64,000 nucleotides of DNA from Chlorokybus atmophyticus (taxonomy: Eukaryota; Plantae; Mesostigma and Chlorokybus algae), in the NCBI GenBank assembly GCA_009103225.1, contig RHPI01002910.1, positions 195,645 through 259,644 of the forward strand, given 5' to 3'. The notes beneath the pieces were generated by a model. The model saw only the letters and a program-made list of their open reading frames with translations, was not told the DNA's origin and did no database searches. Positions 2,473 through 62,853 of this stretch are shown piece by piece. The position numbers and the translations under genes are program-made. Every line of letters starts with the position of its first letter. Position 1 is the stretch's first letter.

Positions 2473-5400
2473 TTATGCGGGTCGCGGCGGGCCGTTTACT
2501 GAACTCCTCGCCAACTTCTCTTTGAGCTGCACAACAGCGCACATCAACATGTGATTATCGTCTCTTTGAGCTGCACGACATCTCCGTCGTCGTTGTGAAT
2601 GATGATGTGCGGTGTCTATCTCTCACCTTCAGCTGAAGCGCACGGTGCGTGGCCACGTCCTGCCGCTCCTCGAACTTGCGGTACAGCTCCTCAGCCCGCG
2701 CCATCTGGAGACTGTTTCACCAAACGGGAGGAAACATTGACATGCACGAGTCCCAGCATCAGTATTGGTCTTTATGCGATTTGACGCACACAAGCGCGCA
2801 TGCGCACGCGCACGCGCTAACGCGTGTGTGCGTGTGTGTCTCTGTATGCATGCACTGAACAGACATACACGTGTTCGTGCGTGTTTCTCTGTGTGCATTC
2901 ACGTGCAACAACACATGCGTGCACGCACGCGCGCACGCATTCTACTGCAATCTATTTAAGGAACCCAACTGACTCTCACACACATGCACACACGTGTGCT
3001 GTATGCACGTGTCCATGGTGTGTTGCGACACAACGCATGTGCACGCACACGTATGCCCTCGTGGTCATGCACACATCGAAAGCACACACGTACGTGGCGG
3101 CTATCTCCTGCGCGAGGCTCTCTTGCGCGACCCGGTCTCTCTCCACCTCCTCCTTCTTCAGCCTCTGCTTCTCAGCCACTTGCGCCTGTTGTGTCACGCA
3201 CATATCACACGTCACGCACATGACCACCCCATACGCGATGTGTTGGTCGCATGTGCAAAAGGCTCTCACGTCGAGTGCGTCGTAGTATTGGCGCCTTCTC
3301 ATGGCCTCCGCGCCGTCCCGCACGCGCGTGTCCGGCTCGCACGGGTACGCGCCCGCAGGCACGTTGAACTGCAACAACACCAGTATCACATGAGTACCGG
3401 TACCACCTTTGAATTGCAAGACAACAAGGCACGCGTGTGTACGCAAGTGTGTGTACCTGCTCTTTCCAGGAAGCCCGGCGCAACTCGGCCTTGCGCCTTA
3501 TCTCATCCACCATCTGAGCCTTTAAGAACTCCTAAGAAGCAACGTGTGCATGTTGAAAACTTCAAACCTTTCAACCACCACCACCACCACCACCACAACA
3601 ACAACAACAGCACTTTTCTCACCCTGTACTCGCGCTCCTTCTCCATCTTCTTCGACTGCATCTTGCGCGCTTCCGCATCGAGCTGCACACAACCACACAA
3701 CACAACGATAAAAGATACGCGCTATACACCATGTGCATATTGACCGTGTGCCAATGTGGTACTACTCCTCCCCCTCACCTTGGCCTTGAGTTGTTGCGTG
3801 TACTTGTCCATGCGCTCCGCCTGCGCGGCCTCGCTCGCAAGCTTCGCCTGAAGACGCTCGTACGCAGAACGCGTCGCGCGGTCTGATGCACATGTGTTGG
3901 TTGTTGTTGATGTGGGATGATGTTGATGTTGTTTGTGTTTGTGGTGGTGGTGGTGGATGAGGGTGAGGGTGAGGGTGATGGTACCTTGGATGCTGAGGTT
4001 GATGGTAGCCGCGAGGGGGGTGCCGGCCTGTATGCGTGAGAGCATAAGCATGAACAACAGCGATGGATGTGAACAGGGAGAAGGAGGAGACGCCAATAGC
4101 GACAGACGCATGCGCACACTATGTGACAAGAAAACATGCACACACACGCAGATGCACACGCACTCGCACACAGCAGCAGCAGCCACTCACCCTGTCAATG
4201 GCGTCCTCGCACGCATCGGCCAGGTGCCTATGCAACAGCTCCGCAGACATATCTCTGAGAAATACCAGATCCAACACATCACCACCAACAACTCCCCCAC
4301 AAACAACAGTTCACACACACATTACATCATCCAACGACAAACTCACAGTTCCCTGCCGTGGTGGGGTTGTCTAAGGCCGCCTCCCTTCAAACCCGCGTTA
4401 TCGGTGTTGGCGCGGGTGGTGCTCGTTGGGTTGTTGGCGTTCGCTCGCACGGTGGTGTTGTCCTTGTTGTTGTTGTTGTTGCTGGTGATGGGGTTGCGAG
4501 GGGGCGGGGCCTTGGGCTTCACCTGCGCGTCGTGGTGTTGGTGTTGCATACCGATACACGTGTGCGCGTATAGCTGCAATTCATACTGTCTGTGTGCCGG
4601 TGTTAATTTACGGGAAAGTCTCTCTTGTGTGCGGGGGAATTACCTTTGTTGCGGGTGTAGGCACCCGCTCTTTACTACTCTGCTGCGCTGGCTTTCTCAA
4701 CTGCAGCAGGTTGTTATGTCAATTACTGACGCACCTACACAGACACGCACATGCACAGACACCAGCACGTACAACTGCAGCACGCATGCATGCACGCACC
4801 GCGCAGACACGCACGCGCACGCATCTCAACCTGCGCTGCGAGATTACGCAGCAGGGTCGCTCACCATGATGATCCCGCTCTCTCTCTCCTCCCCTCCTCC
4901 CTGCTGCGCTGCACTCCTAGCACTCATCCTCCCCCTCCCCCTCTCCCCAATCCCCTTCAGGTCCATCTCCCCCCCNNNNNNNNNNNNNNNNNNNNNNNNN
5001 NNNNNNNNNNNNNNNNNNNNNNNNNNNNNNNNNNNNNNNNNNNNNNNNNNNNNNNNNNNNNNNNNNNNNNNNNNNNNNNNNNNNNNNNNNNNNNNNNNNN
5101 NNNNNNNNNNNNNNNNNNNNNNNNNNNNNNNNNNNNNNNNNNNNNNNNNNNNNNNNNNNNNNNNNNNNNNNNNNNNNNNNNNNNNNNNNNNNNNNNNNNN
5201 NNNNNNNNNNNNNNNNNNNNNNNNNNNNNNNNNNNNNNNNNNNNNNNNNNNNNNNNNNNNNNNNNNNNNNNNNNNNNNNNNNNNNNNNNNNNNNNNNNNN
5301 NNNNNNNNNNNNNNNNNNNNNNNNNNNNNNNNNNNNNNNNNNNNNNNNNNNNNNNNNNNNNNNNNNNNNNNNNNNNNNNNNNNNNNNNNNNNNNNNNNNN

Positions 5401-6090
5401 NNNNNNNNNNNNNNNNNNNNNNNNNNNNNNNNNNNNNNNNNNNNNNNNNNNNNNNNNNNNNNNNNNNNNNNNNNNNNNNNNNNNNNNNNNNNNNNNNNNN
5501 NNNNNNNNNNNNNNNNNNNNNNNNNNNNNNNNNNNNNNNNNNNNNNNNNNNNNNNNNNNNNNNNNNNNNNNNNNNNNNNNNNNNNNNNNNNNNNNNNNNN
5601 NNNNNNNNNNNNNNNNNNNNNNNNNNNNNNNNNNNNNNNNNNNNNNNNNNNNNNNNNNNNNNNNNNNNNNNNNNNNNNNNNNNNNNNNNNNNNNNNNNNN
5701 NNNNNNNNNNNNNNNNNNNNNNNNNNNNNNNNNNNNNNNNNNNNNNNNNNNNNNNNNNGGGTGGGCGGGGGTGGGTGGGGGTGGGGATGCGTGTGTGGGC
5801 GGGCGTGCGTGCGTGTGAATCAGTGTGTATGCGTGCACAACATGTACACGCACGCACTAGGCCTGTTTTCGAGCGCGGGCGTGAGCACAACTCTATGATC
5901 GTCTGTGCGTGCTTTGTCGATGAGCTTTGATTTTGAAGTCTACCTTATTCGCGGCGAGTTGTGCCCCAATCCAGCGGGACACAGCTACCCACACTCTCTG
6001 GCACGTCTGCGGGCTCTCGCGCCTCCTCCTCGCGCACTCCTCAAACACCTCCCTCATGGAAGATGAGCCGTGTGCCCCGTCGCAAACACA
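2473..6090 (-). CDS. Multi-exon coiled-coil protein, weakly CCDC81-like; model incomplete and interrupted by the assembly gap
   Basis: Exon-like segments with splice signals encode charged helical peptides (QAQVAEKQRLKKEEVERDRVAQESLAQEIA; AYERLQAKLASEAAQAERMDKYTQQLKAK; LKEKLARSSVNGPPRPA*). The segment at ~5945-6080 (TCQRVWVAVSRWIGAQLAANK|GT) recalls, from memory, the HU-like N-terminus of CCDC81. Frame continuity across 4200-4900 is not resolved. Confidence 0.45.
4976..5758. other. Assembly gap (783 N)
   Basis: Run of N, flanked by C-rich and G-rich low-complexity sequence. Confidence 1.
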
Positions 6091-15180: not shown

Positions 15181-18091
15181 GCAGTGCATTGGTATGAAGT
15201 CGGTCTGATTGTGGCACTCGCCGGTCTCCCACTTTCTTTGCTCATTTGCTGAGTGCGGTCATCATGGAACACTTGCATACCCGAGCGGGGCGTGCTATGT
15301 CTGAGTGTGGTTTCACATGTGAGGAGGATGGCACGCGCACACTTCATGCTATGCATACTTGAGAACAACAATGTAGCAAGCGCGCAGATTGTGTGATGTG
15401 ATTTGAATGAATCAGGTTGTGTCGCCAATATCAACTTCACTTACACCAGGCTGTCTGAGCAGGCGTTGTTGGTGCTAGCTCTTGTAACATGTCGTGCGAA
15501 CGCTGTACTTGTCGTGCGGGGATACAAGCCGGCCCAAGTCGGTTGTACAACCCACTTGCTGCTCGCAGTTATACATGTATATATGCTTCCTTCCTACTTA
15601 AGAGCTTGCTTTTGCAACTCTTGTTTGTTATTTACCTTTGTCTGCGGCCAATCGCACACGCATGTGCACGCCGACGCTCACATAAGCAGCAGTAAAACTC
15701 GCATAGTTGCTATATTGTAGATATCATGATTGTATGCACTTGTAGTGGAAACCCGTTTATACAATGTATGATTTATTGTGTAACAATATGATCGTGCAAG
15801 ACATATAGCTGCTTTATGTGCTCATGATTAATGTGGTTGCCCGCAATGCGTAAGTAGCAATCAACTGTGCACAAGGGCTAACCACCCGTTACCATATGCG
15901 CAAGTAGTAAGTAGCAGTCCATCATGCACGAGGTCCTTGCAAGTGTAATGTATTGCATAATGTATGTCAAGATATGCACATTGATCAGATTACAATATAG
16001 TTCAACTTGCGATGCGCATTATACCACATCGCTCCCCTTTGAAGAAAGCGGATAAATTGCTGGTCGATCATAGGGCGTACCAACTTGCACGGTAGTGGTT
16101 GCAGAATCCCACATTTCAGAGTCACATGTGGGATGAAGGGCTTGAACTCAATGTGCACGTAGTACAATAATGTACAGCCAATCGCATAAAGTTACGGTAA
16201 CTGCTTTGGTGCAGTAATTCTATGTTGGTTTTATGCTGACGGAGCATAAATGATTGGCTATATAAGTACATTACATATATGATATAATGTATATTACAAA
16301 TACTTATAGAAATTGCTATGATCGTTTCTACACTCATATCAATATAGATAATTACGTGGTCGTAGCATATGTGACGATACAACATTCCCAAATGCTGCAC
16401 ATGTAGCTTCACAAGCTTGGCTTATGCATATCTACAAGTAATACATATTCAATATGTTTGAAATATATCTCATGTATTACGTGGATCTAAGACTGTCTGA
16501 TATGCGTGTCTATATTGAGCTCTAGTTCCCAATCTCTTACGCATCCAATTTGTGGGTATTGCTTCAAGGTGTATTGTGTGTCGCATAACAATGAGAAATT
16601 GCAAGAACATACAAGATGACTTACACAAGCAGATGACGTTTTTTGCTCCATGCATTTAACAGCCTGTGCACGATTGTTGTTGGATGTAAGGCGCGTCTCG
16701 ATGGTAGGGCGATCAACGTGCTTGCAAGTGGGAGTTCAAGCAATAATGTTATACACCGCCAATCACTCTCGCAATCAATGACAACATGCCGAGTTGCTCA
16801 TGTGCCACTAAGTATGCAACACAATATACCTCAGCTCACTGCGACCGTGTCGTGCACAATATAAACATTGACCTACATCATATGGCGCTCCGATATGCAC
16901 TTCATGAGTTGTAGACCGCAGGTGTCAAGCACTCATCTCCTCTCTGCACGCACAACAACGGACTCCTAGTAGAAGTGGGTGTGTTAACTTAGGTAGATAA
17001 CGCATAGCCGTGCAATACTTGGACTAAGACATATGCCACATTGGCCGGGATGGGTAAGAGTGCTTTCATCAAAAGTATCGTACAGTATCGTAACATTATC
17101 TGTTACCTCATCTTCAGTTACACAGATACGATACCAAACGCAGCATATGTTAAAACATTACGTTTGTTGAAGAATGTCATGGATAGCATACCTCACCGCA
17201 AAAAAACCGCCGGCGGAGGCTGTGCAATACTAGTACCGTCACGCAGGCTAGCAACATCAGCCCGCATGTGCTCAAGCTTGCTCCCATTGGTAGTTTCTTC
17301 TTTGCGTTCAACTGCACTACTTTCTGCAGTAAGAGACCGTGAGGCTGCGTCAACAGCCCCAACGACGACACAATGTGAGTGGCCGGAGTGTTACCGCATC
17401 TCATTGTCGTGCCCATCTTGCACAGTGCATCCAAAGGCTCTGGACCCCTCTTCACCACAGGCACAGGCACACGCAGTGCACATGGAGTGCCTGTCAGGCA
17501 CGTGCACATGCATACGCACACGCACAGGCACAGGCACTGCCATGAAAATTCAGTACAGGCACATTCAGACTGATTCTGGACCTCGACTGTGCTACAGGTG
17601 TGTCCGGCATGGGCCCGACCGCCCTCATGGTTTGGTCATCGCTGATGCACCGTCATCTCAGTTTAGACAAGGACTTGAAGAGAAACTAGACACTTGCCTG
17701 GGGATGAAACACTCCTTCTATAGGCGAGTATCACAGCGTGCATCACTAGCAAGTTGGGTTGTACTCACCAGCAAGCTAAACGCTACCCATACCAACTCAA
17801 GCTAGCGTGAGGTGTCCATCACCTCATTAAACTTGTATCGCGCAGCATATGGGCATGCACCTGCATTGCGGATAATAGGACAAAATTTGCGTTATCCACG
17901 CAACCTTCGCATTGAACATACGATATGCATTGAGCCATGCACTAAACAACACACCATTCATGGGTCAAAACTCTTCCTTATCCAGCAACGATTACACTAC
18001 ACTTGCTCATCCAATGACTAAAGCGCTCCCGGTATCACAAGCAATTGCAAGCAACAATGTGTCAACCAGACAATGTGTCCACAATGTCATC

Positions 18092-21000
18092 TCAAAAAAC
18101 GCCTAAAAACTTGTTGCGCGCCAATGCGGCGCGCAGTCGTCTGCCTCGTTCCCCGTTGTTATAGAGTCTATGATACGTCCAGTACGCGCCCAACACGGAC
18201 TTGACGTAATATTTCGTTTCGCCGAAAGGCAGCTGCTCGACAAACTCGTCCCACTCCATCGCCTTCGAGCGGCTGAGCCAGTCGTCAACCAGCCCTGGAC
18301 CCGCGTTATACGCAGCAATGGCAGGCACTAGGTTGTTGCCGCCGTACAGTCCACTGACCCAAGCTACATACCTTTCAACATAGAAGGGTTGTAAGCCACA
18401 AACCACAGCTGCAACTTGCATGTGCATGTGTATACGCATGTGTATATGTCTGTGCATACAAATGTGTGGATGAACGTGTGCGCGTTGATGTGTGGTTACT
18501 CTACCATGAGCCGAGGCGGACGCTGTCTGCAGCGTTCATGAGATCGTAGCTCGGGACTCTGGCGCACTCGGCAATCCACTTGGCAGTCTCGGGCATGAGC
18601 TGCATCAGGCCCCTCGCGCCGACATGAGACATTGCTTTGGCATTGAACTGAGATTCCTGCAGGCATCTGAACGTGTCAGCACTGATGCATACGGACTTCA
18701 ACTACATGATTATGGTATGCAGCGCGGACATGCGCGCAAGCGCACGCACGATGGTAACATCCACGACACCTTGTAGGGTGTCGGTGGTGCACGCACCTGT
18801 CGTATGACTGCCATAACTAGAAGCGGGTCCACGTTGTATTGCTTTGACCAGTAAGCCACCCTGTCCCAAGACACACTCTGCTTGCTATCGTCCTGCAGAA
18901 AAACCTGATATTAAAGTCGTGTTGTGTACAAGTGCCGCTCATAGTATTGCGCCAACCGACATGCCAGGGATAGAGTTGAACACCCATTTTCAAACATACA
19001 CTCTTCTGTCTACACACTTTGGGTTACCTGTATACCGCGCGGTAACGGGTACACAGCGCGCAGGAAGCCCTGGCACTTCTCTAGCTGCTTGCACAGTCTG
19101 CGCTCGAGCGGCGTGTTGGCGCGCGCCATCGCACTGGCGAGCTCCATGAGCCCAACATGCGTGTCTCCGAGACCTAATCTAGGGTTCGGTGACTCGTCAG
19201 CCCTGCAGATGCTGTTGGGCAACAAACATTGCGCGTGATAAAACTGACCTCAACAACGCTTGTGTGATGGCCTCAGCAACCGAGGGCGTTCGCTCGTGCA
19301 CGTACTCGTGCCTGTGCCAATGCTCCCATGCAGCTTTGTATTCACCTGTGGCGCGAAAACCAAACGGACACCGTGTCTATCACGCAACCATATGGCGCAA
19401 GGCACCCCTAACATGCGCGCACGCACACACGTGCGTATGCGCACATGCACACGCACCTTTGCGGTACAGATGCCGCAGCTTGATTGATCCAACAGGCAGC
19501 GGCGCGTTGTCCAGGTTCCTTCGCCGCAGGAAAAATGACTTGGCTCTGCTGCCGATGGTGGTAGTTGTGGTGGATGCGAAGGCGACGGTGCTGATATCCG
19601 TTATCAACATGCGACTCCCCGCCGTCTGCTGCTGCTGTTGTGCTGATATCATCGACTGCGCGCTGACTGCCTCACCTACAGGCGAAGAGGGCCCCTCACC
19701 TGCTATGCTCAGCGCTGCGCTGAGACCAGGCTGCAAGCACGCTGCCGCACTCCAGCCATAGTAGGACTTCAACACACAAACACACAGTGATAACTTAAGT
19801 CTCACACATGTCATTGGTGGTCACTGACTGACTGCAGTGCACGAGACTGAACCTTGCGTGCAACCGTTCAAGACTATGATAGAGCATTGCGTGCAGGAAG
19901 AGCATACTTGTGGATGGCTTGCGAGCGCTCTCCGCCACCATCTGGCAGCCTGTCTATCATGTCCTCGCTTCTTCTCTATTCGCCCATTCTAACAGCAGGG
20001 GGGGGACGTTACAAAACATGCATGACACACACCACAACGGCAACGCGATGCAGTGTTGCAATTGGGTACGAACAGGACTTACCCAGTACAGCGCCCCAGC
20101 AGCGTATGCGCTTTGCAGGTTGGCTTTCGCTATGCCCTGAGACAAATCAGTGTCACTCAGTCACGATCGACGAGCACAAACAACAACCGCGCCACGGGTA
20201 CAGCAGTCAAATTTGTGCTTGACAACAACCACAAGCACAACCACGCGCGTTGAGCAACAATAGTCGTGAAGAATCAAAATTACAGAGAGAGACAAGCAGC
20301 AGAAAGTAACTGTGCCTGCAGCTGATCCAGCGCTTGCGGCCACTGCCCTTGCTTCAACGCAGCCATTGCCCCGTCCCACCTCACCTGATGCCAAGACATG
20401 CTGAGAATATGCAACACCACACCTGAATAGGTAGTAATTTGCTAGTTCTCCATTAAGCGATTGCAGGTACTGACCTCCGCAGCCGCATGACTTGTCGGAT
20501 GCCTTTCCAAAATCAGCTGCTCAGCTGCATGCAGCGCAGCCTACAGTCGGTACAGTCACTCACTCTGGTTGTTGAAGGGAGCAACAACAACAACAACATA
20601 AGCCACATGTAATGCATGACAGGATCAATGAGCTCCCTCTTACCTGTGCATCATCCGCAGCTTTCTTGCGCTGCTTCATCGCCGTGCTTCCAGCATACGA
20701 CGCACGGATGCTCGCGGCCTGCGCCCGCGCGGTGGCCGCTTCCGCATGCAGTATGCGCCGCAGGGCCGAACGCGCTGCGGTGCTCGCGGCCGGGCAGTCT
20801 TTCGCAAGTGTCTGTTGCGGGCAATGAGACCGTCGCGTTGTAGAGCACAAAGATGTCACTGGCTATCAACAGGCATAGAACATGTAAGCTCACTTCAAGA
20901 TGCTCGACGGTCTCTACTCGGTTCGTGGACAAGCAGGCGAGCCGCCATCTGGCCTGAGAAGGCAAATTTGATCACGATGATATACTCAATTTTGGCGCAA

Positions 21001-41840: not shown

Positions 41841-43790
41841 CCGCATTTACCCGATCACAGTCCCCCCCTTTTTACAGTGTCCCCCCCCCCCCAATATGGG
41901 GGGGTATTGTATTCGGGGGGGGATATTATTACAAGGGGGGGACTATGTTTGGTAGCAGGGGTTGCCGCCTTTCCCGCCTTTCTTCCGCAAATCTCATCCT
42001 TGGGGGCGACCAACTGCGTAGTTGGCGGCGGTGTGGTTGTGGAGGGCGGTGTGGTTGTTGAGGGCGGTGTGGCTGGCGGCAGTGGCAAATGGTTGGTCGG
42101 GCTGCTGCAAGGCAGGCCAGCATGCGCCGGCTTGAGGAGGAAGCAGCGGCTGCTGCTGAAGTGGCCTCAGCAGCGGCAGCGGCTGCAGTCGAGGTTGCTG
42201 CCGCAGCTGCTGCTAACGGCAAGGCAGACCAAGCAGCACGTGAGGCGCGCCCAGATGGGGTGGTTGCAAAGCAGCGCGCACGTGAGAGCAGTTGTAAAAA
42301 GAATAAGAGGCACCTGCGCCGTCAATTTACAATAAGTTAAAGATGTGCATTCGGTAATGCTTGCTTGCGTGTGTTGTGTCAGCGCAGTTAGTTTCTGCTT
42401 GTGCACCTGTTCAACACATGCTCGACATTGATAAGCAGCTAATGCAAAGGTTGTGTGTGTAGCTGAAGATGTTGCGTCGGGCACGCCATATTGGGGTGAA
42501 GGCTGCAGCACGTGAGCATGATGTCTATCCAAAAAGCATTCGTGAATGGATCAAGCAGGGCATTAACATCACGGGCAGCTTGAGGTCTGCCTTCCGTTTG
42601 CAAGGGGGTACGATATGTGCAATATACTTGCAACATGGATTGTAAACATCAACATGCAGTGTTGAATGTGGTGCTGCCCTTTGACATGCAGGTGGGCGCA
42701 AACCACAATTCCCAGACCTGGAGGAGCAGTTGTTCGCCTTTGTCAAAGACAAGCGCATGCTTGGCCTTGCTGTTTCGCAGTAGATGCTACAGGTACTGCT
42801 TGTACACACGCACTCCTTGCTAACTGCTTGTGCATACCCACGCACTCATTGCTGACTGCTTCCTAACTTACACACGCACTCATTGCTAATTGCTTGTGTA
42901 CATGCACACGCACTCATTGCTGAACCCTTGTGTACATGCACACGCAATTCGTGCTGAGTGGTTGTGCACATACCCACGCACTCATTGCTGACTGCTTGTG
43001 TACATGCACATGCACTCATTGCTAACTGCTTGTGCACATACCCACGCACTCTTTGCTAACTTACACACACACTCCTTGCTGAATGGTTGTGCCCATACCC
43101 ACGCACTCATTGCTGACTGCTTGTGCACATACACTGACTGCTACACTGAATGCTTGTACACTTACACTCATTGCTAACTGCTTGTGCTTATGTGTACATG
43201 CTCAAACAGGCGCTTGCGAAGCAGCTGATCGCAGAGGCCGACGAACAGTCGCCCGACAAGCATGTGCACTTCAACGCCTCCTTAAACTGAGCAGTGAGTT
43301 TTTACAAACGCCACGATCTTGTCGTGCGTGCTCGCACGAAGGTGGGCCAGAGAGCGCCTGCTCAGCAAGCAGAGATTATGACATCCTTTAGGTTGTTTGT
43401 TGATGGCATGCGGAAGAAGAACAAGTACACTATGCAACAGGTGCATTTTGTTGAGTAATTGCTTGATCAACCACAAGCAAGCAAGCAATCAAATGATAAT
43501 CATACACTTTGTGGCAGATTATCAACATGAATAAGGTTAAAGACTTTGCATCAGCGAGGCGCACGAACTGTGGCCCATGACAACAAAAGGTCATGAGAAG
43601 GCGAGCTTTACCCTTGTTCTATCAGTTTGTGCTGATGGTTCCAAGCTGCCTCCTCTTGTTGTGCTCAAGCGGAAGACGGTGCCGCGACCTCAAGGTGCCG
43701 GGCATGCACATCTACGCCAACAAGAAAGGGTGGATGAATGAAGATATGTGCGTGGAGTGGGTGGACGTAGATGTGAAGAAGCGCCCACAG
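41841..43790 (+). mobile_element. Degenerate, 3'-truncated pogo/Tigger (Tc1-mariner superfamily, CENP-B-like) DNA transposon with spliceosomal introns
   Basis: Exon remnants: LKMLRRARHIGVKAAAREHDVYPKSIREWIKQ (HTH); GRKPQFPDLEEQLFAFVKDKRMLGLAVSQ*MLQ (CENP-B HTH); FNASLN*AVSFYKRHDLVVRARTKVGQRAP; IINMNK...GHEKASFTLVLSVCADGSKLPPLVVLKRKT, then a frameshift to ...ANKKGWMNED (DDE_1). Candidate left end TA|CCGCATTTACCCGATCACAGTCCCCCC at 41841. No right TIR found. Confidence 0.85.
42811..43200. repeat. Minisatellite of ~30-35-nt degenerate units (CACACGCACTCATTGCT(A/G)ACTGCTTGTG...) inside a transposase intron
   Basis: About ten imperfect tandem copies visible directly. Confidence 0.8.
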
Positions 43791-43909
43791 GTGCTGAGTG
43801 ATGTGCATTGACTGCTTGTGCTTGCACACACATGTAACATACATGTGTGTACAAGCAGTGCTTGTTGCTTGTGTGCATGCATGTGTATTTCGTGTTGTTG
43901 GTGTTGTGC

Positions 43910-44280
43910 ACGCTAACTGGCTGACTGGTTGCGGAGCACGCACACTTGTTTGTGTGCACACTGGCTGGCTCCTTGCTTCCGACTGCTTGTGCGCATGCTG
44001 CTTGTGTGCATGCATGCGTACTTGTGTGTGTGCACATTGACTGGCTGGCTGGTTGCTGAGCACGCACACTTATTTGTGCACACACTGGCTGGCTCCTTGC
44101 TTCCGACTGCTTGTGTGCATGCATGCGTACACGTGTGTGTGCACACTGACTGGCTGGCTGGTTGCTGAGCACGCACACTTGTTTGTGCACACACTAGCTG
44201 GCTCCTTGCTTCCGACTGCTTGTGTGCATGCATGCGTACTTGTGTGCATGCATGCGTACTCGTGTGTGTGCATGCTGATT
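43910..44280. repeat. Tandem repeat, three ~110-130-nt units
   Basis: Unit containing CTGGTTGC(T/G)GAGCACGCACACTT...CTGGCTCCTTGCTTCCGACTGCTTGTG occurs three times in a row. Confidence 0.85.
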
Positions 44281-44435
44281 TGCTGACTGATTGGCTCCCA
44301 CACTTGTTGTGGCTTGTATGCATAATACTATAATATTATAGAATGTTATATATATAGGTAATGGTGTATGCATAGTATATATGATATACGCAATCTTTTA
44401 TACATAATATATAATATAGTATATCAATAGTTTCA

Positions 44436-49700: not shown

Positions 49701-49824
49701 CATACACTGTGAATGCTTCAATTGGGCACAGCTTGCCGCCTAGGTTAGCATGTAGAGTCCTGATCTCCTTTTTTCTGTTGCAAACAGCTCTTTGGCTTTC
49801 CCTGTACGTAACGGCGAGTCAGAC

Positions 49825-51240
49825 ATGACGTTACAGGGAGGATTGGGCGTGCTGTTGCAGAGGGAGGGCTTCACTTCTCTTAAAGTCTGGACCGTGGTGG
49901 TGTTGGCGGTAGCGTTGCTGTTCGCATTGGTCGTGCTCATCCGGATCACCCGTGCCATTGCGAGGTGGCTTCCACATCACATTGCCGTCATGGCCGGCAG
50001 CTCTGAGCCCCGTTTGCAGTGGAAGAACGAAGTGTTGGAAGTCTTGATGGGGAGGCTGTTTGAGGGATTGGGTGGGCTTTTGGAGGGTGCAGGCGCAGCA
50101 GGACTTGCCGCAGCGAGCCAGCTGCGCGTCCGTGCAACCGGCATGGATGTGAACCTGTTTGTCGCATACGACAAATTGAAGGTCGCTGAACAGCTGATGT
50201 CGGGCTTGGCGACCAGCTGGATGGTGCAGGCAACATGGGCGGTCTGCGTGCCGCCCATGTTTGTTGCGTGGCTGGTCAGCACACAAGGAGGCGATGCGTT
50301 GCTGATGATCGGCATGGTGGGCCTCGTCATTTCCCTGGGGACGGGTATCTGGGGAATGCAGCACTACATCGCTCATGATGCCGATGTTGACCTCCTCACG
50401 ATGAAGTGCTTGGACATGATCATATTTGGGGTGATCACCACAACAACCGATGCTTCAGGCTGGAAGGCTGCTGGCAACGACAGATATGCGCTGGGCGATT
50501 GCGATATAGACCGCGAGAGCTGCAAGGAGGAGGTGGCCTGCATGCGGAAAACTTTGGTGCTTTATCAAGATGCCGTCTCAGAGAGCCTTGATAAGGTAAG
50601 CGCTGCTGCACACATTATCTCGTGCATTGTGCGTGATGCGTCACATTGCTTTCTCATGATGACATTGCATATGTTGGAGCACTCCTTGGAATGTTCATTA
50701 TGGCTGCATAACAAAGATTCTGTACAGCAGTATCCATGCTTTGCGCACGCATGTGTAGTTGACAGGAAGTCGAGCATTACTGATGATGCAACGTGTACAG
50801 CAGTACACCTTGCATCATCAAGAACGTGAATCCCTGCACTTGTGAAGCTCACGACAGCGCACATGACCTTCAAGCACCCAAATGTGTTCTACATCTGTTC
50901 AATAACTGGCTTGCTGTGTGTGCAGGCATATTTGGTGTTGCTTCTCAGCCTGTTAACGCTCCTCTGCACGTTCTTGGCTACCGAGGTGGCCACGAGCTTT
51001 GCACCCTGGATGTTTCAAGTGCTTGTCGAAAGTGTGACATGCTATTCCAAGAGCTGTCACTACCTGCGCTCGAGTCACCTTTCGCTTAGGACAACGCAGC
51101 AAAAGGTCTTCGAGGAGGTTCATCGCGCAACCTCGGTCACCGACATGCCGAAGGAGGCTTTTGCAGCTGCTGCTATCCAACTGCTGCAGAACACGCTGCA
51201 CAATCCGCAGTCCACTACTGCGGATTACCTGAAGTGCTAG
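49825..51240 (+). CDS. Hypothetical multipass membrane protein; exons ~49825-50595 and 50926-51240 (an upstream exon near 49340-49607 is possible)
   Basis: Long open exon with several hydrophobic helices (VWTVVVLAVALLFALVVLI; ATWAVCVPPMFVAWLV; ALLMIGMVGLVISLGTGIWGM; AYLVLLLSLLTLLCTFLA). The AAG|GTAAGC...TGCAG|GCA junction is in frame. No family recognised. Confidence 0.65.
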
Positions 51241-57442: not shown

Positions 57443-59163
57443 ATGGGCGAGGAGGCAGAAGTACACAAGAAGGTGGACTTGACTGATCATGATGATGCTG
57501 TTGACCATATCAGTCTTGATACTGGTAGGGTATTGATGATCGTAACCCGGGTACAGGTAGCTTGTGTGTACCACTACCCATGCCCAGATGGAGTGTTTGC
57601 CGCAGTGGCAGCACACCTGTACCACAAAGCCATTGGCTGCAAGGTACCAACTGTGTCTGCCTCAGAGTTCCCGTGTACGCGCCTTTGCACGGCGCCATCA
57701 CGTATGCACACCAGTGGACATGCACGTGTTAACCAACGCACATTATAGCATAGTAAGGTATACCTGTTCAAGCCAAGGCAACTGGTGTTTGGTCACAACG
57801 CGCATGCTTTGGCAGGTCGACTTCTATGCCAACACAGTGTTCTCGCCACTGTCGCTGGATAGTTGGAACCCAGAATCATATGATGCGGTGTACATGCTGG
57901 ACTACATTGGCCCTGCGGGCTATGCGCAAATGCTGGCAGCCAAGACAAAAAGTTGTGTCACCTTGCAAATGTCTACTCGAGCCCGCACGCTTAGCTTTAG
58001 CTTTGATGCCTCTTATTCTGGCTGACTCTTATCTTAGGTGTGGTCTTCATGCCAGCAGGCTGATTCTGTTGGACCATCACAAGACCGCTGCGGAGTGTTT
58101 GGCTGAGTCAGAGCTGCCATCGAACATAGAAACCACCATCGACATGGCGCGGAGTGGCGCCACCATTGCATGGGACTACTTCCATCAGAAAGCAAGCACG
58201 CAAGGTTTTTACATCCCATCACACCTGAACTGAGTGTTGCTTTCAGATTTGTCTTCTGTATACGATGGCTTCAACTCTTGTTGTAGAGTGAGACTCACTT
58301 GTGTTACCTCTTTTCTGTCCAGGGTTGGAGCTTGTGCAAGCGAAGGATAGGGAGCGTGTGGACTCATTGTTCAGATATATCGAAGACGCGGATCTCTGGC
58401 AGTGGAAGCTGCCAGGCAGTAAAGCCTTCACCTCTGGCTTGGGTGACTTGCAGCTGGAGATGGACATCAACCGCAACGGGAAGCTGTGGAGTGAGCTTCT
58501 GGCCCTGGAGCCCGCGGCACTAATCAGGAAAGGGGAGAGGAGTCTGAAGGCCAAAGACGTTGCGTTGCAGCGAGCAATGGCCACGAGCTTTGTTATCGAG
58601 CTGGGCGGCCACGGCAGATGCTTGGTAAGGCTGGTTGGGTGGTGCCTCTCAAGTGGTGATTGGTTGTGGTTGTCTGTGTGCGTGTGTTTGCCGTCGTCTC
58701 AGTGCACCGCAACAGCGCAGGCGGTGAGGGCAGATGAACTGAAGCATCTGAGAAGTGAGTTGGGCAACAGGCTCGCTCGCAAGAGCCTCAAAGCAGGGTT
58801 AAGGTGCGTGGTTGTTTTCTGTGACTGTCGTTCTTACAGCACAAAATGTTGCAACCATCCATTGCTCTCTGCTACGCTGTGCAAGTGAACAGTTCTCTTC
58901 TTGGCAGAGGGATTGGTGCAGTGGTGTATACTCCATCAGAGGACACGAGCTTAGTGAAAGTGAGTCTGCGTAGCATTGGAGAAGAGGAAGACACCACAGT
59001 TATATCAAAGGTACCGGCTTCGCTGCACCAGGTTATGTTGCGCATGCGTGTGCACGCGCGTGTGACATGCTTCTTTGGCCAGGCTTATGGCGGAGGTGGG
59101 CACTGCGCTGCAAGTTCCTTCCTGATAAGCAAGCAAGATTTTGCAACATGGCTTGTGGATTAA
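57443..59163 (+). CDS. DHH-family phosphoesterase with DHHA1-type C-terminus
   Basis: Motifs YHYPCPDG, YMLD, ILLDHHKT, RSGATIAWDYF, YIEDADLW, KVSLRS and GGGGH in order across about 7 exons; TAA at 59161-59163. Start codon is tentative. Confidence 0.88.
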
Positions 59164-59476
59164 GCTGCGACACCTCTTTGTGCATCTGAAAGGCACTCGT
59201 GTGTGGAGAACAGGTTGCAACGAGCCCATGGATTACAGGTGCAACCTGTCAGATGCGCGCAAGAGCAATCCCACACGCACGTACCAGCTAGTACTGTGGA
59301 GTGTTTGCATGTCGTGTTGGATGAAGTATAGCAAGCCTGTCCACGGACACCATGCAAAAGTGGTAGGATATGACTAGTATGGCTTAGCAGCATATGTGCG
59401 ATAATTACAGGTTGAAGCCGCTATCCCTGTGCAGCAGGTGATATAAATAATGCAATATAATAGTGTTGCCAGGCCA

Positions 59477-62000
59477 TCACTCTCTGTCATCAACAGCAAG
59501 CCTGGATCGGCCTTCATTGTCCAGCAGCTGCATGTCAAACTCCTCGTCGTCATCTTCGGGCTTGAACACCTTTTTCAAGCGGGCGAAGAAGCCCACCTTT
59601 GTCATCTTCTGTCGGCGCGCAGCCTCCTCTTCGGCAAATGTGGCATAACCGTGCACGGGCCTCACCACCTTGGACTCCTTTTCAAACCTCCTGAAGGCTT
59701 CCACCAGCTCGGCCGCGTCCCGCGAGTCCTCAACACTCAAGGCCGCTGCTTCTCCCTACAGGACAACATGAAGGATATGCAGCGAGCCAATGCACACCCA
59801 TACGGACAGCATGCAGTTCTGTAGCATATTCCCTGACAAAGATGGTTCACCAAGAAGGTGTACATTGCAACAATATTACACCATGTACCTCCTGCTCGTC
59901 TTCGACCATAGGTGAAGCCATGGAGAAGGTTGCCAAGCCAATGCGCCCGGCATCGCTTCCAGCAAAGGACACCGCTCCTACTTCACCCCTCCCATGCTCC
60001 TCGGCCTGCACGCACGCAGCAGAGCCCAACATGAAGCTGCTTGCGTGGACGCCTAGCACAACTGTGCCATAAGACCCTTTCTCATGGACTGCTAGGCCCC
60101 TGGCTGCGGTGTGCGTGGCTCACCCTTATCACAGGTGTTTGCTCATTTGAAACCATGACCTGCTGGGCCTCCTGTGACTGTGGCCGGCGCGACATAAACA
60201 TGGTGAGGCCAGCCTGGGCCCAAAACATCCAGCATGAACAACATGGATGGATGATGACGCTACCCCCCACAGAGCCTAGCTGACAGTGCATGGCAAAGCC
60301 TATCCGTGCCATTATCGTTACCTCATGTAACAGCCGATCGACGGACAGTACGCTTTGCCATCGTTTACGTATTCTTTGCAAGTCTTCTTGCTTGTGAACG
60401 GCATCAGCCTGCCAGAGCAACGTGATGTAATGGTTTAGCACTATAGCACTACAACATCCACGAGTGTGCAATGACAGCAACAGATACCTGATCTTGGGAT
60501 GAAGTTGATTGACTTGGTGACTTTTTGCGCAGTGCACGTGTCACGAAGATGGCCGCGGCAATGGTGCACGCAAGTAACGACCCCAATAATGGTATGGGTG
60601 AGAGAAAGTCCACTGGTAACCTTGCCTGAGCAGAGACGAGGATGTCATGCAATGCAATGAAGTGCAAATTGAGCAGAGACGGAGATGGGTTAGAAGAAAC
60701 AAAGTCATTTGCCAAGTACCGGCCGGAAAGTTGTATTTGCTGCAATTGCTGCGATTGTGCGCGGGGCTGCCTGGCTGGCATCAATGGCTCTGCGTACGAC
60801 TGCGGACGTGCTTGGGGGGAGGCATATCTCGCTGTTGCCGCCCTCGCTGTCCCGCAGCGGTATTCGTAAACAGAAGCCCTCTTGCACGTAGTTAGCATTG
60901 GTAAGCGAGTTGTACGCCGCTATCTCTTTGGAAGACATTGCGTATCTGCACAGCCGTTTATGATTGAATGTTGTGGCACATGACGACCGCTTGCGCCTAC
61001 GTGTGTCCGTGTTTGCCCATGCTTGCGTGCCCTTGCATGCAAGCTCTGTGTGCGCATGCTGTTTGTGTTAAAATGCACGCGACAACACCACAGCCTGACC
61101 TCCTTGCAACTTTTGACAGCGTGTCTCCTCGAACGAGTGTGTACAGCTGGTCACTTGATGTGGTAGCGTGAGCAGTCTGGCACACCAAAGAAACGCTGTC
61201 AGTGTTTTGGCAGGTCACGCCTGGCACTTCCACTTGAACTCTGCTTGAATAATCGCGTGTTTTGTTTAACTCTATACCGTGCAAGTGCTTCTGACCAAAC
61301 GAACAGACAGGGAAGTCGTATTCAACCAAAACTTTGCACAGTCAGCCACGACAACTGAGCTGCTCAGTTCAGCTCAGTTCAGCTGTGGACAACTGGTTGG
61401 CACTGGTAATCTCCCCAGCAACATTTTAACGTTGGCTAGCAACCTACAGACTACCTCTTGTGAAGTATAACTCCACAGATCAAGGTACTTGCAGTTCTGT
61501 GCAACGTGACACAAATAGCCTTACACATTTGGCACTGTCTCTAGCACATTGTTGCTGCCTGACAGACGTCATGAGCGGATGCGTGTGTTCTTTGTTTGCA
61601 TTGATCCATAGGCATTTCTCATAAGCATTGGACTGTGCATTGTAAAACCCTAAGGCATGCCCTCAGCCAGTGCGCACACATTGCGAAAGGGTTAGCTGTC
61701 ACATCATGCATCACACAATGTGGCGCACAAAGCATGCCTCTGGCACCTCACCTCATCACTACGGACGCCCACCACAACCTCATTCCTCTTGACGTCCTTT
61801 CCCACGCCTCTCCCGCCGCCGCCGCTGCCGCCGCTGGCAGCAGCTCTGCAAGCCGTTGGGGGTGGCGCCTCTGCTACTCTTCGCCTTGGCCTAGCGCAGC
61901 GTAGCCTTCCTCCGGACACCTCCGTCGACCACGACAAGAACAGTCCTGCGCATGCCTCCCCAGCCAAGGACCCGGACACCGCCGCCACCGCCGCCGCCAT
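59477..62000 (-). CDS. LysM-domain protein with transit-peptide-like N-terminus, one transmembrane helix and a charged C-terminal tail
   Basis: LysM split by an intron (61099-60946): YTLVRGDTLSKVARR|YAMSSKEIAAYNSLTNANYVQEGFCLRIP. TM PIPLLGSLLACTIAAAIFVTRALRKK; N-terminus MAAAVAAVSGSLAG...RLRCARPRRRVAEAPPPTACRAAAS; last exon ends LAVDDRE*. Confidence 0.8.
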
Positions 62001-62853
62001 GTTCTCAGCCTTATTTTCTACAATTTTGCCGCCAATTTTTTCTCCCAAAATGCCATGCCCGTTTGAGGAGCGCACGCTGCGGTCAGTTGGACGAGCCCGC
62101 AGCCGGGCATCAGCAACCTATTCAGCACGCTCGCCTGCATGCATATCGGGTCCAAGGCTTGATATCTGTAAGACAACGATATCAAAGTGCAGTGCCAGCA
62201 ACAATCATTCCCTGCGCTCTGCATGTTGACGTGGCAGGCTGCACAGTCAGTGGGCGGAGGCGGCGGCGGCGGTGGTGGCGCCGGTGCATATAGCCGTCGT
62301 TACTCTTGGTAAAAGTTGCCGTGTGTTACAGAATTTGTTGATCAAACGGTGGTTGTGAAGCCAGGCGGAGGGGGAGGCGCGTCTGTCTCGTGGTAAGCTG
62401 TAGACTTTGCCAAGCATAAGATTGCTGTTGGCATTGGCACCATGTGTGCTTTTGCAATCACACACACCTAGTTCTGGTCAGTTGAACTCTGTGCAAGAAA
62501 TGTAACTCTGTAAGTGCTCTTTGAAAACGAGTACCAAAAAGCAGCAAAGCTGTTGTTGTCTTGATAAACTTGCATGCCACGAGTTTGTTTTCGTCTTTTT
62601 GGTGCATTGCAGCTCATGCGCACACACGACAGCACATGCAAGACCTGCGCTGAGCTCACACTGCATGTCCCTGTGCGTCTTTCACAGGCGCCAACATACA
62701 CAAAACAGAGCCCTGAGAGAGAGTGACCTCCACCCCTATTCCACACACCACAGACACAGACAACATGAGCTCAACGCGCCACTGAAGCCATGCCCTTCAC
62801 CTCATAACCCTACCCACACACAACCCTCACGCACGCACACACACCCAACAACC

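Follow-up and report, generated by a model that had tools for sequence, protein, structure and literature searches.

What a membrane protein with a single LysM domain does in an alga, and on which membrane, is the question raised by a gene in the 64,000-nucleotide stretch of the Chlorokybus atmophyticus genome that we analysed (the window; GCA_009103225.1, contig RHPI01002910.1, positions 195,645 to 259,644). The initial annotation had read its product as a candidate tether between the plastid envelope and peptidoglycan. As to how the plastid peptidoglycan of the green lineage is positioned and linked to the envelope membranes, we know only of hydrolases (DipM) and one correlative candidate (PPASP) that have been proposed. 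A protein that joins a LysM domain to a membrane anchor, has no catalytic domain and begins like a presequence is a reasonable candidate for such a tether, its genome also containing a nuclear gene for a lytic murein transglycosylase (SLT). If it is a surface protein instead, it is one of the kinase-less glycan sensors of algae, which have been little studied. In both cases, its domains form an ordinary combination and its tail is lineage-restricted. We find that the architecture is real, but that it does not force the reading as a plastid-envelope peptidoglycan tether; the protein, about 408 residues long, probably crosses the membrane once and serves, without catalytic activity, as a tether or sensor that binds glycan.

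The coding sequence comprises 1227 nt (408 codons and the stop) in eight exons (Table 1). All introns are of the GT-AG type, are 79-575 nt long and have matching phases. Coding potential was assessed with a codon-usage log-odds score trained on 10 homology-confirmed exons from the same window. The proposed frame was the best of six in eight of the nine exon pieces, exon 8 scoring highest, and all seven introns were negative in every frame. The eight-exon gene is confirmed as real; it is a nuclear gene of the green lineage. Elsewhere in the window, an SRT2 exon is 64-70% identical to its counterparts in streptophyte algae, land plants and also chlorophytes. The candidate TGTAA signal behind the stop codon (Table 1) would hint at derived chlorophytes, but is statistically weak.

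Table 1. Features of the LysM membrane-protein gene and its product (positions are those of the window).
Feature	Positions	Strand	Evidence or remark
Whole coding region	59477..62000	-	8 exons; ATG to TGA; GT-AG introns; phases consistent
Start codon ATG	62000..61998	-	context gagaacATGG
Exon 1, 83 aa, presequence-like N-terminal region	61752..62000	-	predicted; codon score 0.205, ranking first among six frames; first in-frame ATG; donor GAG/GTGAGG
Exon 2, 25 codons + 2 nt	61100..61176	-	PF01476 match in last 14 codons
Last 14 codons of exon 2, N-terminal third of LysM	61102..61143	-	PF01476 positions 1-14, 13.4 bits
Start of exon 3, C-terminal two thirds of LysM, with the last base of the codon that intron 2 interrupts	60858..60945	-	PF01476 positions 16-43, 13.3 bits
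Remainder of exon 3, 46-aa linker	60720..60857	-	48% S/T/A/P; one NTT sequon right before the membrane segment
Exon 4, 46 aa: TM segment, RALRKK, then Ser-rich stretch	60488..60625	-	hydropathy; no Pfam family
TM segment, 19 aa	60539..60595	-	Kyte-Doolittle mean 2.17
RALRKK	60521..60538	-	translation; directly after TM segment
Exon 5, 29 aa, charged	60322..60408	-	splice sites and phases
Exon 6, 18 aa	60160..60213	-	splice sites and phases; predicted end, as use of another in-frame donor at 60124 would lengthen it by 12 aa
Exon 7, 39 aa, acidic, Gly/Ala-rich	59889..60005	-	codon score 0.30
Exon 8, 92 aa + stop, charged tail	59477..59755	-	coding score 0.515
Basic amphipathic helix in exon 8, KVGFFARLKKVF	59564..59599	-	
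Acidic cluster, then DMQLL, in exon 8	59522..59536	-	
Stop codon TGA	59479..59477	-	
TGTAA, candidate poly(A) signal of chlorophyte type	59405..59409	-	motif, 68 nt 3' of stop; weak, background ~1 per kb per strand

An alternative is that the model is partly wrong, in that exon 1 or the 3' end differs or intron 5 is retained, so that the architecture is incomplete or partly artefactual. Intron 1 stands out by its length of 575 nt (the other introns measure 79-154 nt), and the coding scores of exons 2 and 4 are weak. Exon 6 has two in-frame donors; its extension to the second scores -0.27 bits per codon, compared with 0.08 for the short exon. Intron 5, 108 nt long, keeps the frame and contains no stop, yet its codon usage is that of non-coding sequence. 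Nor did exon 8 find a relative, or itself, in a representative library drawn, one protein per cluster, from about 15 billion predicted proteins clustered at 50% identity. Against such an error stand the GT-AG boundaries and matching phases of every junction, the coding scores of the exon pieces and the non-coding scores of the introns, and the exact restoration of the LysM domain across intron 2. Furthermore, no in-frame ATG lies upstream of exon 2 and an upstream exon is therefore needed. On balance, we regard a faulty model as quite improbable.

The LysM domain is split by intron 2. The Pfam profile PF01476 has 43 positions and a gathering score of 20.9 bits. The piece in exon 2 aligns with its positions 1-14 at an E-value of 0.079; exon 3 aligns with positions 16-43 through its first 29 residues at an E-value of 0.08; and position 15 is the codon that the intron divides. 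When the exon-wise scores of the two halves are added, they amount to 26.7 bits, which is above the gathering score. The conserved positions (Y-x-V-x-x-G-D-T-L ... N ... G-x-x-L-x-I-P) are present in the translations, which read YTLVRGDTL in exon 2 and ...AAYNSL...EGFCLRIP in exon 3. Two ordered, adjacent and complementary halves of one LysM model are far beyond what chance would give, and the single well-formed LysM of the initial annotation is borne out. A phmmer search of the PDB with a LysM half returned one match only, an unrelated repeat, which we discarded.

The remainder of the described architecture also holds. Behind the LysM domain follow the Ser/Ala/Pro linker and the TM segment, the hydrophobic core of which is preceded by one K/R and one D/E and directly followed by four K/R in six residues. 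The charged tail beyond it is about 178 residues long, and its last exon alone contains 17 K/R and 23 D/E. As had been claimed, the protein has no kinase or catalytic domain: an exon-wise Pfam search found no Pkinase, M23 or other catalytic family, and no family other than LysM in any exon; in exons 5-8 there was no match at E<=1 save one of noise.

The tail is probably largely disordered, with two short amphipathic helices. A single-sequence AF2 model of exon 8 alone has a low pLDDT of 51 and places helices at residues 11-27, an amphipathic stretch of acidic and basic residues, and 53-64. The basic amphipathic helix listed in Table 1 resembles a bacterial membrane-targeting sequence. Two further elements of the tail, DMQLL behind an acidic cluster and the motif YATF, resemble cytosolic sorting signals. 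The tail may instead be lineage-specific filler, or the 3' exons may have been modelled wrongly, even though exon 8 scores highest for coding.

How might these parts work together? The order is presequence-like region, LysM, flexible S/T/A/P linker, TM helix, RALRKK as a putative stop-transfer flank, and charged tail. If the positive-inside rule holds, the tail would lie on a cytosol- or stroma-type side and the LysM domain on the opposite face, i.e. the cell exterior, the endomembrane lumen or the plastid intermembrane space. There it would bind a GlcNAc-containing polymer, be it peptidoglycan, a chitin-like glycan or a glycoprotein. Devoid of enzyme activity, the protein would serve as a tether or sensor and connect the glycan on its LysM domain with whatever partners its tail recruits. 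Topology, kind of ligand and function are inferred here, the first of them by the positive-inside rule.

The choice between compartments depends first of all on the N-terminus. We took transit peptides to contain few acidic residues and to be enriched in hydroxylated residues, Ala and Arg, and secretory signal peptides to combine a basic n-region, an uninterrupted hydrophobic core of 7-15 residues and small residues at -1/-3. Residues 1-31 contain no basic residue and two Glu (E15 and E27). Residues 4-22 have a Kyte-Doolittle mean of 1.56, with the Glu at position 15 inside this hydrophobic core, and S-W-S at 23-25 offers a possible cleavage site after residue 25. An Arg-rich block follows at residues 32-41, including RPRRR, and then a stretch rich in A/G/S/P. 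Over the first 60 residues, Ala accounts for 25%, Arg for 12% and Ser plus Thr for 15%. The N-terminus called transit-like in the initial annotation is only loosely so. An Arg-rich block behind an N-terminus that lacks positive charge is more in keeping with an organellar presequence than with a classical signal peptide, and the charge-difference rule, applied across the N-terminal hydrophobic stretch, likewise argues against the latter.

These properties, together with a host that belongs to Viridiplantae, agree with import into the plastid. In its complete form, this explanation has a transit peptide, an anchor in the inner envelope, a stromal tail, and a LysM domain that sits on peptidoglycan in the intermembrane space as a tether or sensor. 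The acidic character of residues 1-31 is atypical of transit peptides. In addition, what is known of import mechanisms suggests that a stop-transfer event after import would leave the LysM domain in the stroma, and an intermembrane-space LysM would therefore need re-export. The combination of LysM, TM, basic flank and tail is also a standard layout of type I surface proteins. We consider this complete scheme rather unlikely, and still more so a specific version in which a green alga that has kept its plastid murein would use a lineage-specific, non-enzymatic tether of the inner envelope, unrelated to PPASP or DipM. Its LysM domain would hold the murein layer in the intermembrane space, and its stromal tail with the basic amphipathic helix would connect this layer to the inner envelope on the stromal side.

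That same layout, with an ectodomain, an S/T/A/P stalk, a TM, a basic flank and a tail, is canonical for a secretory type I protein. In this explanation, a weak, Ala-rich signal peptide would be cleaved, the LysM domain and the stalk would face the wall or the lumen, and the tail would be cytosolic. The N-terminal 22 residues are moderately hydrophobic, small residues lie near the possible cleavage site, and the motifs of the tail would suit a cytosolic location; by our estimate, however, such short motifs are expected by chance roughly 5-10% of the time. Furthermore, the hydrophobic core contains a Glu, lacks a basic n-region before it and runs directly into the RPRRR block. Such a secretory protein is a tentative possibility, and so is the role it would have as a kinase-less protein, receptor-like or wall-anchoring, whose LysM recognises a glycan of the wall, or else chitin or peptidoglycan from microbes.

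The characterised LysM receptors of plants are all secretory (PMC2728734). Like LYP/CEBiP/LYM proteins and LysM-RLKs, the protein described here combines a LysM ectodomain with membrane anchorage, and we would expect it to recognise a GlcNAc polymer (chitin or peptidoglycan) at a membrane surface. In contrast to its one LysM, ambiguous N-terminus and absence of a Pkinase match, however, LYP and LYK proteins have three tandem LysM domains, and these families have a clear signal peptide and a GPI anchor, a short tail or a kinase.

A third explanation dispenses with cleavage altogether. The N-terminus is not convincing as a signal of either kind, and if it were retained, it and the LysM domain would be cytosolic, the TM would sit in an endomembrane and the tail would be lumenal, making the protein an algal counterpart of LysMn or LYSMD3-4. 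LYSMD3 (PMC8344708) and the non-secretory LysMn (PMC2728734) are similar to it in size range; they have one LysM in the N-terminal half and no catalytic domain, and LYSMD3/4 share its single TM, with the LysM N-terminal to it. This resemblance is one of layout only, with no similarity detected beyond LysM. The position of RALRKK on the C-terminal side of the TM predicts the opposite orientation, with the LysM out, and the exon-wise searches found no relative. We hold this uncleaved form to be unlikely.

As regards location as such, the plastid envelope and the secretory pathway or cell surface are about equally probable, neither being favoured, and some other location or an error of the model is unlikely.

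Precedents from plastids point both ways. DipM/NlpD-type proteins with LysM and LytM(M23) domains occur in cyanobacteria, Cyanophora and Physcomitrium, and their LysM acts on peptidoglycan in the intermembrane space (PMC4015805). No other plastid LysM system bound to peptidoglycan is known to have been localised by experiment. DipM is soluble, usually has several LysM domains and ends in an M23 hydrolase, whereas our protein has one LysM and a TM, and its exons 4-8 contain no M23 or other catalytic family at E<=1. PPASP, a small two-part protein described in 2016 and reported only from streptophytes that have the peptidoglycan pathway, with which it co-occurs, was proposed to reside in the plastid envelope membrane and to touch the GlcNAc moieties of plastid peptidoglycan (PMC4815162). 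Compared by description, the two proteins agree in being non-catalytic with one TM helix and one LysM. Their order differs: PPASP has an N-terminal TM of 21 aa and a C-terminal LysM, and neither a transit peptide nor a long tail, whereas here the LysM precedes the TM and the long tail. LMR1 of Chlamydomonas (Cre09.g393765), which has two predicted LysM domains and not one, was seen at patches of the chloroplast envelope (bioRxiv 10.1101/2022.05.31.493820). It shows that LysM proteins of green algae can be envelope proteins, and also that they can be so without peptidoglycan, as its ligand is thought to be something else because the host lacks most peptidoglycan synthesis genes. Similarly, LYSMD3, an animal protein with LysM and TM found at the Golgi or the plasma membrane, binds chitin and beta-glucan, but not peptidoglycan (PMC8344708).

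The genomic setting contributes one more argument for the plastid. An intact, intron-bearing nuclear gene for an SLT lytic murein transglycosylase lies in the same window, 40 kb from the LysM gene, and the genome thus contains peptidoglycan-active genes. Full peptidoglycan toolkits are reported to persist in scattered green lineages. However, the SLT enzyme could equally be antibacterial or horizontally acquired, and its gene does not place the LysM protein in any compartment. In a scan of bacterial genomes, its exon matched diverse phyla at 40-54% identity with no cyanobacterium in the top 80; as the scan depends on exact 8-mers, these matches say little about the origin of the gene.

Outside the LysM domain, exon-wise searches show no detectable relatives, and these searches supplied no orthologues that could be profiled against Mur genes. 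Word searches with exon 8 and exon 3 gave no match among targets of 0.55-1.75 times the query length, a range that excludes full-length kin, and these blanks are therefore weak. Metagenome scans with exon 3 and with exon 8 found no relative either. The representative library gave exon 8 two marginal matches, to a repeat in a RhoGAP protein and to a bacterial adhesin, which were rejected as chance matches. When each exon was compared by tblastn with the surroundings of sirtuin homologues at three loci (two algal contigs of JGI metagenome 3300060284 and Klebsormidium nitens DF237358), no exon of the LysM gene was found nearby; a Klebsormidium match with an E-value of 0.008 sits in non-coding-looking sequence and was dismissed. 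An exact look-up of two ORFs of the window retrieved no record, and Rfam had no match in the window. Downstream of the stop codon, the TGTAA motif may correspond to the poly(A) signal of chlorophyte type (PMC1868727).

The LysM gene, a candidate gene for a protein with one LysM and one transmembrane (TM) segment, had been placed at 59477-62000, and a minus-strand coding region matches these limits. It opens with an ATG at 62000..61998 (context gagaacATGG, no earlier ATG in its open frame) and closes with a TGA at 59479..59477. All introns separating its eight exons (see table) are GT-AG with consistent phases, and a codon is split by intron 2 only. The coding sequence amounts to 1227 nt (408 codons and the stop), and the introns are 79-154 nt long, with the exception of intron 1 (575 nt). 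For a codon-usage log-odds score, we used as the training set 10 homology-supported exons of other genes in the window (TsaD, TPR, DnaJ, SLT, Cnd3, a prolyl-oligopeptidase-like gene, sirtuin and NCS1). The proposed frame ranked first among six in 8 of the 9 exon pieces (0.52, 0.30 and 0.21 bits/codon for exons 8, 7 and 1, respectively), and all seven introns were negative in every frame. Exons 2 and 4 scored weakly, yet the proposed frame was still the best. A significant error in this gene model is quite improbable.

Features of the window (window-relative positions)
Feature	Position	Strand	Remark
LysM gene exon 1	62000..61752	minus	predicted from sequence alone
LysM gene exon 2	61176..61100	minus	
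LysM gene exon 3	60945..60720	minus	
LysM gene exon 4	60625..60488	minus	
LysM gene exon 5	60408..60322	minus	
LysM gene exon 6	60213..60160	minus	
LysM gene exon 7	60005..59889	minus	
LysM gene exon 8	59755..59477	minus	
LysM gene intron 5	60214-60321		108 nt
Pfam LysM, first piece	61102-61176	minus	in exon 2
Pfam LysM, second piece	60855-60944	minus	in exon 3
TGTAA, LysM gene	59405-59409		68 nt past stop
TGTAA, SLT gene	17992-17996		96 nt past stop
SLT catalytic domain	18095..18892	minus	three exons
DHH/DHHA1-like gene	57561-59163	plus	
Stop-free stretch	49756-50826	plus	357 codons
N run	about 4980-5780		assembly gap

Two possible splicing variants deserve mention. Exon 6 has an alternative in-frame donor at 60124, 36 nt downstream, which would add 12 residues, and the added piece scores like an intron. 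Intron 5 is in frame and free of stops, so its retention would leave the protein unbroken. Retention of intron 5 would alter the tail by 36 residues, and alternative splicing of exon 6 (60124-60159) by 12, with the frame kept.

The Pfam LysM model (cut-off 20.9 bits) was tested exon by exon and therefore as two pieces. The exon 2 piece corresponds to model positions 1-14 (13.4 bits, E 0.079) and the first 29 residues of exon 3 to positions 16-43 (13.3 bits, E 0.08), while the codon that intron 2 interrupts provides position 15. Neither half reaches the cut-off by itself, whereas their sum is 26.7 bits. Since the halves are complementary parts of one model, follow each other in the correct order and meet at the splice junction, and since the signature residues read from the translations are complete (YTLVRGDTL ... 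N ... G..L.IP), we accept the one well-formed LysM of the initial annotation. By these membership tests, the predicted product is a LysM protein. Exon-wise Pfam searches found neither a second LysM nor any other domain in any exon of the gene, in agreement with the proposed absence of a kinase or catalytic domain.

The architecture downstream of the LysM also turned out as first described. The Ser/Ala/Pro linker that follows the LysM is 46 residues long, 48% of which are Ser, Thr, Ala or Pro, and carries one NTT sequon. Exon 4 encodes a hydrophobic TM segment of 19 residues (mean hydrophobicity 2.17), preceded by ten residues with one basic and one acidic side chain and followed directly on its C-terminal side by the basic RALRKK. 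According to the positive-inside rule, the LysM would lie across the membrane from the tail, which this flank puts on the cytosol- or stroma-type side. The charged tail (exons 5-8) comprises about 178 residues, with 17 K/R and 23 D/E among the 92 residues of exon 8. A single-sequence AlphaFold model of exon 8, of low confidence (pLDDT 51), contains an acidic/basic amphipathic helix and a second, basic amphipathic helix (KVGFFARLKKVF) of the kind found on membrane surfaces. The tail ends in an acidic cluster and DMQLL, which resemble an acidic-dileucine sorting signal, with an estimated chance expectation of 5-10%. The protein is likely a non-catalytic, single-pass, glycan-binding tether or sensor, in which the LysM lies opposite a charged and mostly disordered tail.

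Of the known LysM proteins, LYSMD3/4 and LysMn have a layout in common with the window protein, the likeness being one of layout only. It is not a PPASP, as the domain order differs, and not a DipM, as it has no M23 domain; it differs from the LYP, LYK and LMR1 types in having only one LysM. Its translation would place it with single-LysM, single-pass, non-catalytic proteins, with a tail that looks lineage-restricted. Word searches with exons 8 and 3 were blank, although they are little informative as they covered proteins of 0.55-1.75 times the query length. A representative search with exon 8, open to any protein length, gave two marginal matches, a repeat in a RhoGAP protein and a bacterial adhesin, which are not relatives. 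It gave no self match, and hence the window protein is absent, in this form, from the representative library. Two metagenome scans returned no relatives, and the neighbourhoods of three homologues of the adjacent sirtuin gene, searched with every LysM gene exon, yielded nothing. Given these exon-wise results, the non-LysM parts look lineage-restricted.

The N-terminus is less clear-cut. The composition of its first 60 residues (A 25%, R 12%, S+T 15%) is like that of green-algal organellar presequences, but acidic residues come early and the first Arg comes late, unlike in such presequences: residues 1-31 contain no basic residue and have Glu at 15 and 27. The earlier label "transit-like" is therefore a fair impression of the sequence and not a finding. 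Residues 4-22 are moderately hydrophobic (KD 1.56), residues 32-41 read RLRCARPRRR, and an Ala/Gly/Ser/Pro-rich stretch connects residue 41 to the LysM. The succession of LysM, stalk, TM, basic flank and tail fits the textbook layout of a type I surface protein, and a secretory type I membrane protein is possible, if on the unlikely side. Its N-terminus would make a poor signal peptide: the core contains a Glu, the n-region is not basic, and a strongly basic block follows shortly after. The charge-difference rule states that a basic block after a hydrophobic stretch disfavours translocation of the part that follows, and RLRCARPRRR is expected to act in this way. That the protein is signal-less, with a cytosolic LysM, appears rather unlikely.

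The same window holds, 40 kb away, the SLT gene for a lytic murein transglycosylase with an intact catalytic domain. Its motifs are complete (catalytic Glu-Ser, GLMQLMP, AAYNAGPG), its middle exon reaches 44.4 bits by itself (E 1.4e-11), and alignments with bacterial Slt proteins cover all three exons. The gene probably extends to about 21400, and its upstream exons resemble a helical domain of the Slt70 type. In a pattern-limited scan, the best bacterial matches came from diverse phyla at 40-54% identity, with no cyanobacterial match among the best 80. With a spliced nuclear gene for a murein-cleaving enzyme, the genome must handle peptidoglycan in some way. The substrate need not be plastid murein, as the enzyme could be antibacterial.

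The initial annotation proposed a plastid-envelope protein with its LysM in the intermembrane space on plastid peptidoglycan. A transit-peptide protein arrested in the inner envelope normally keeps its N-terminal domain in the stroma, so this orientation requires a re-export route, which counts against the proposal. It is favoured by the Arg-rich, presequence-like block, the green-lineage host, the SLT gene and published precedents. In the intermembrane space, DipM acts on peptidoglycan (PMC4015805). PPASP (TM and LysM) is found together with the peptidoglycan pathway and has been suggested to make contact with peptidoglycan from an envelope membrane (PMC4815162), and imaging placed Chlamydomonas LMR1, which has two LysM domains, at envelope patches (bioRxiv 10.1101/2022.05.31.493820). 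However, most peptidoglycan synthesis genes are missing from the LMR1 host (same reference), which makes it less secure to go from envelope to murein, and LYSMD3, an animal protein with LysM and TM, binds chitin but not peptidoglycan (PMC8344708). The full proposal is rather unlikely.

The LysM gene and the SRT2-type sirtuin gene are arranged head-to-head (62000-62851), with their ATGs about 850 nt apart, and probably share a promoter region. This pair is not kept beside the Klebsormidium nitens sirtuin or on two algal metagenome contigs. The sirtuin exon matches SRT2 proteins of Viridiplantae only, which makes the contig green-lineage and not human; the best matches (64-70% identity) are from Closterium, Spirogloea, Klebsormidium, Mesotaenium, a lycophyte and mosses, with chlorophytes close behind. 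The metagenome contigs Ga0590114_0001372 and Ga0590114_0002156 (JGI metagenome 3300060284; 92 kb and 72 kb, ~49% GC) are evidently algal nuclear DNA annotated by a prokaryotic gene finder. On both, "hypothetical proteins" of 319 and 298 residues contain the same sirtuin exon, at 64% identity to the window.

Four 3' ends were examined, and TGTAA occurs past the LysM and SLT stops as well as 230 and 387 nt past two others; AATAAA hardly occurs in the window (0.12 per kb). UGUAA is the poly(A) signal in derived chlorophytes and is absent in streptophytes (PMC1868727). The four 3' ends give only a hint of a host among the derived chlorophytes, whereas the best sirtuin matches lean to streptophyte algae.

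The DHH/DHHA1-like phosphoesterase gene is convergent with the LysM gene (stops ~310 nt apart) and shows DHH and GGGH motifs in translation; Pfam gave no match on its single exons. The N run explains why the 4001-6000 bin appears to have a GC of 0.35 and why long pseudo-ORFs of X occur there. Many imperfect CA/CG-rich low-complexity stretches occur window-wide (e.g. 85-600, 2800-3300, 43700-44300) and translate to His/Thr/Ala/Cys runs in several frames, giving long spurious ORFs. The 357-codon stop-free stretch is of high sequence complexity, matches no Pfam family and encodes several hydrophobic segments; it may form a large exon of an uncharacterised membrane protein.
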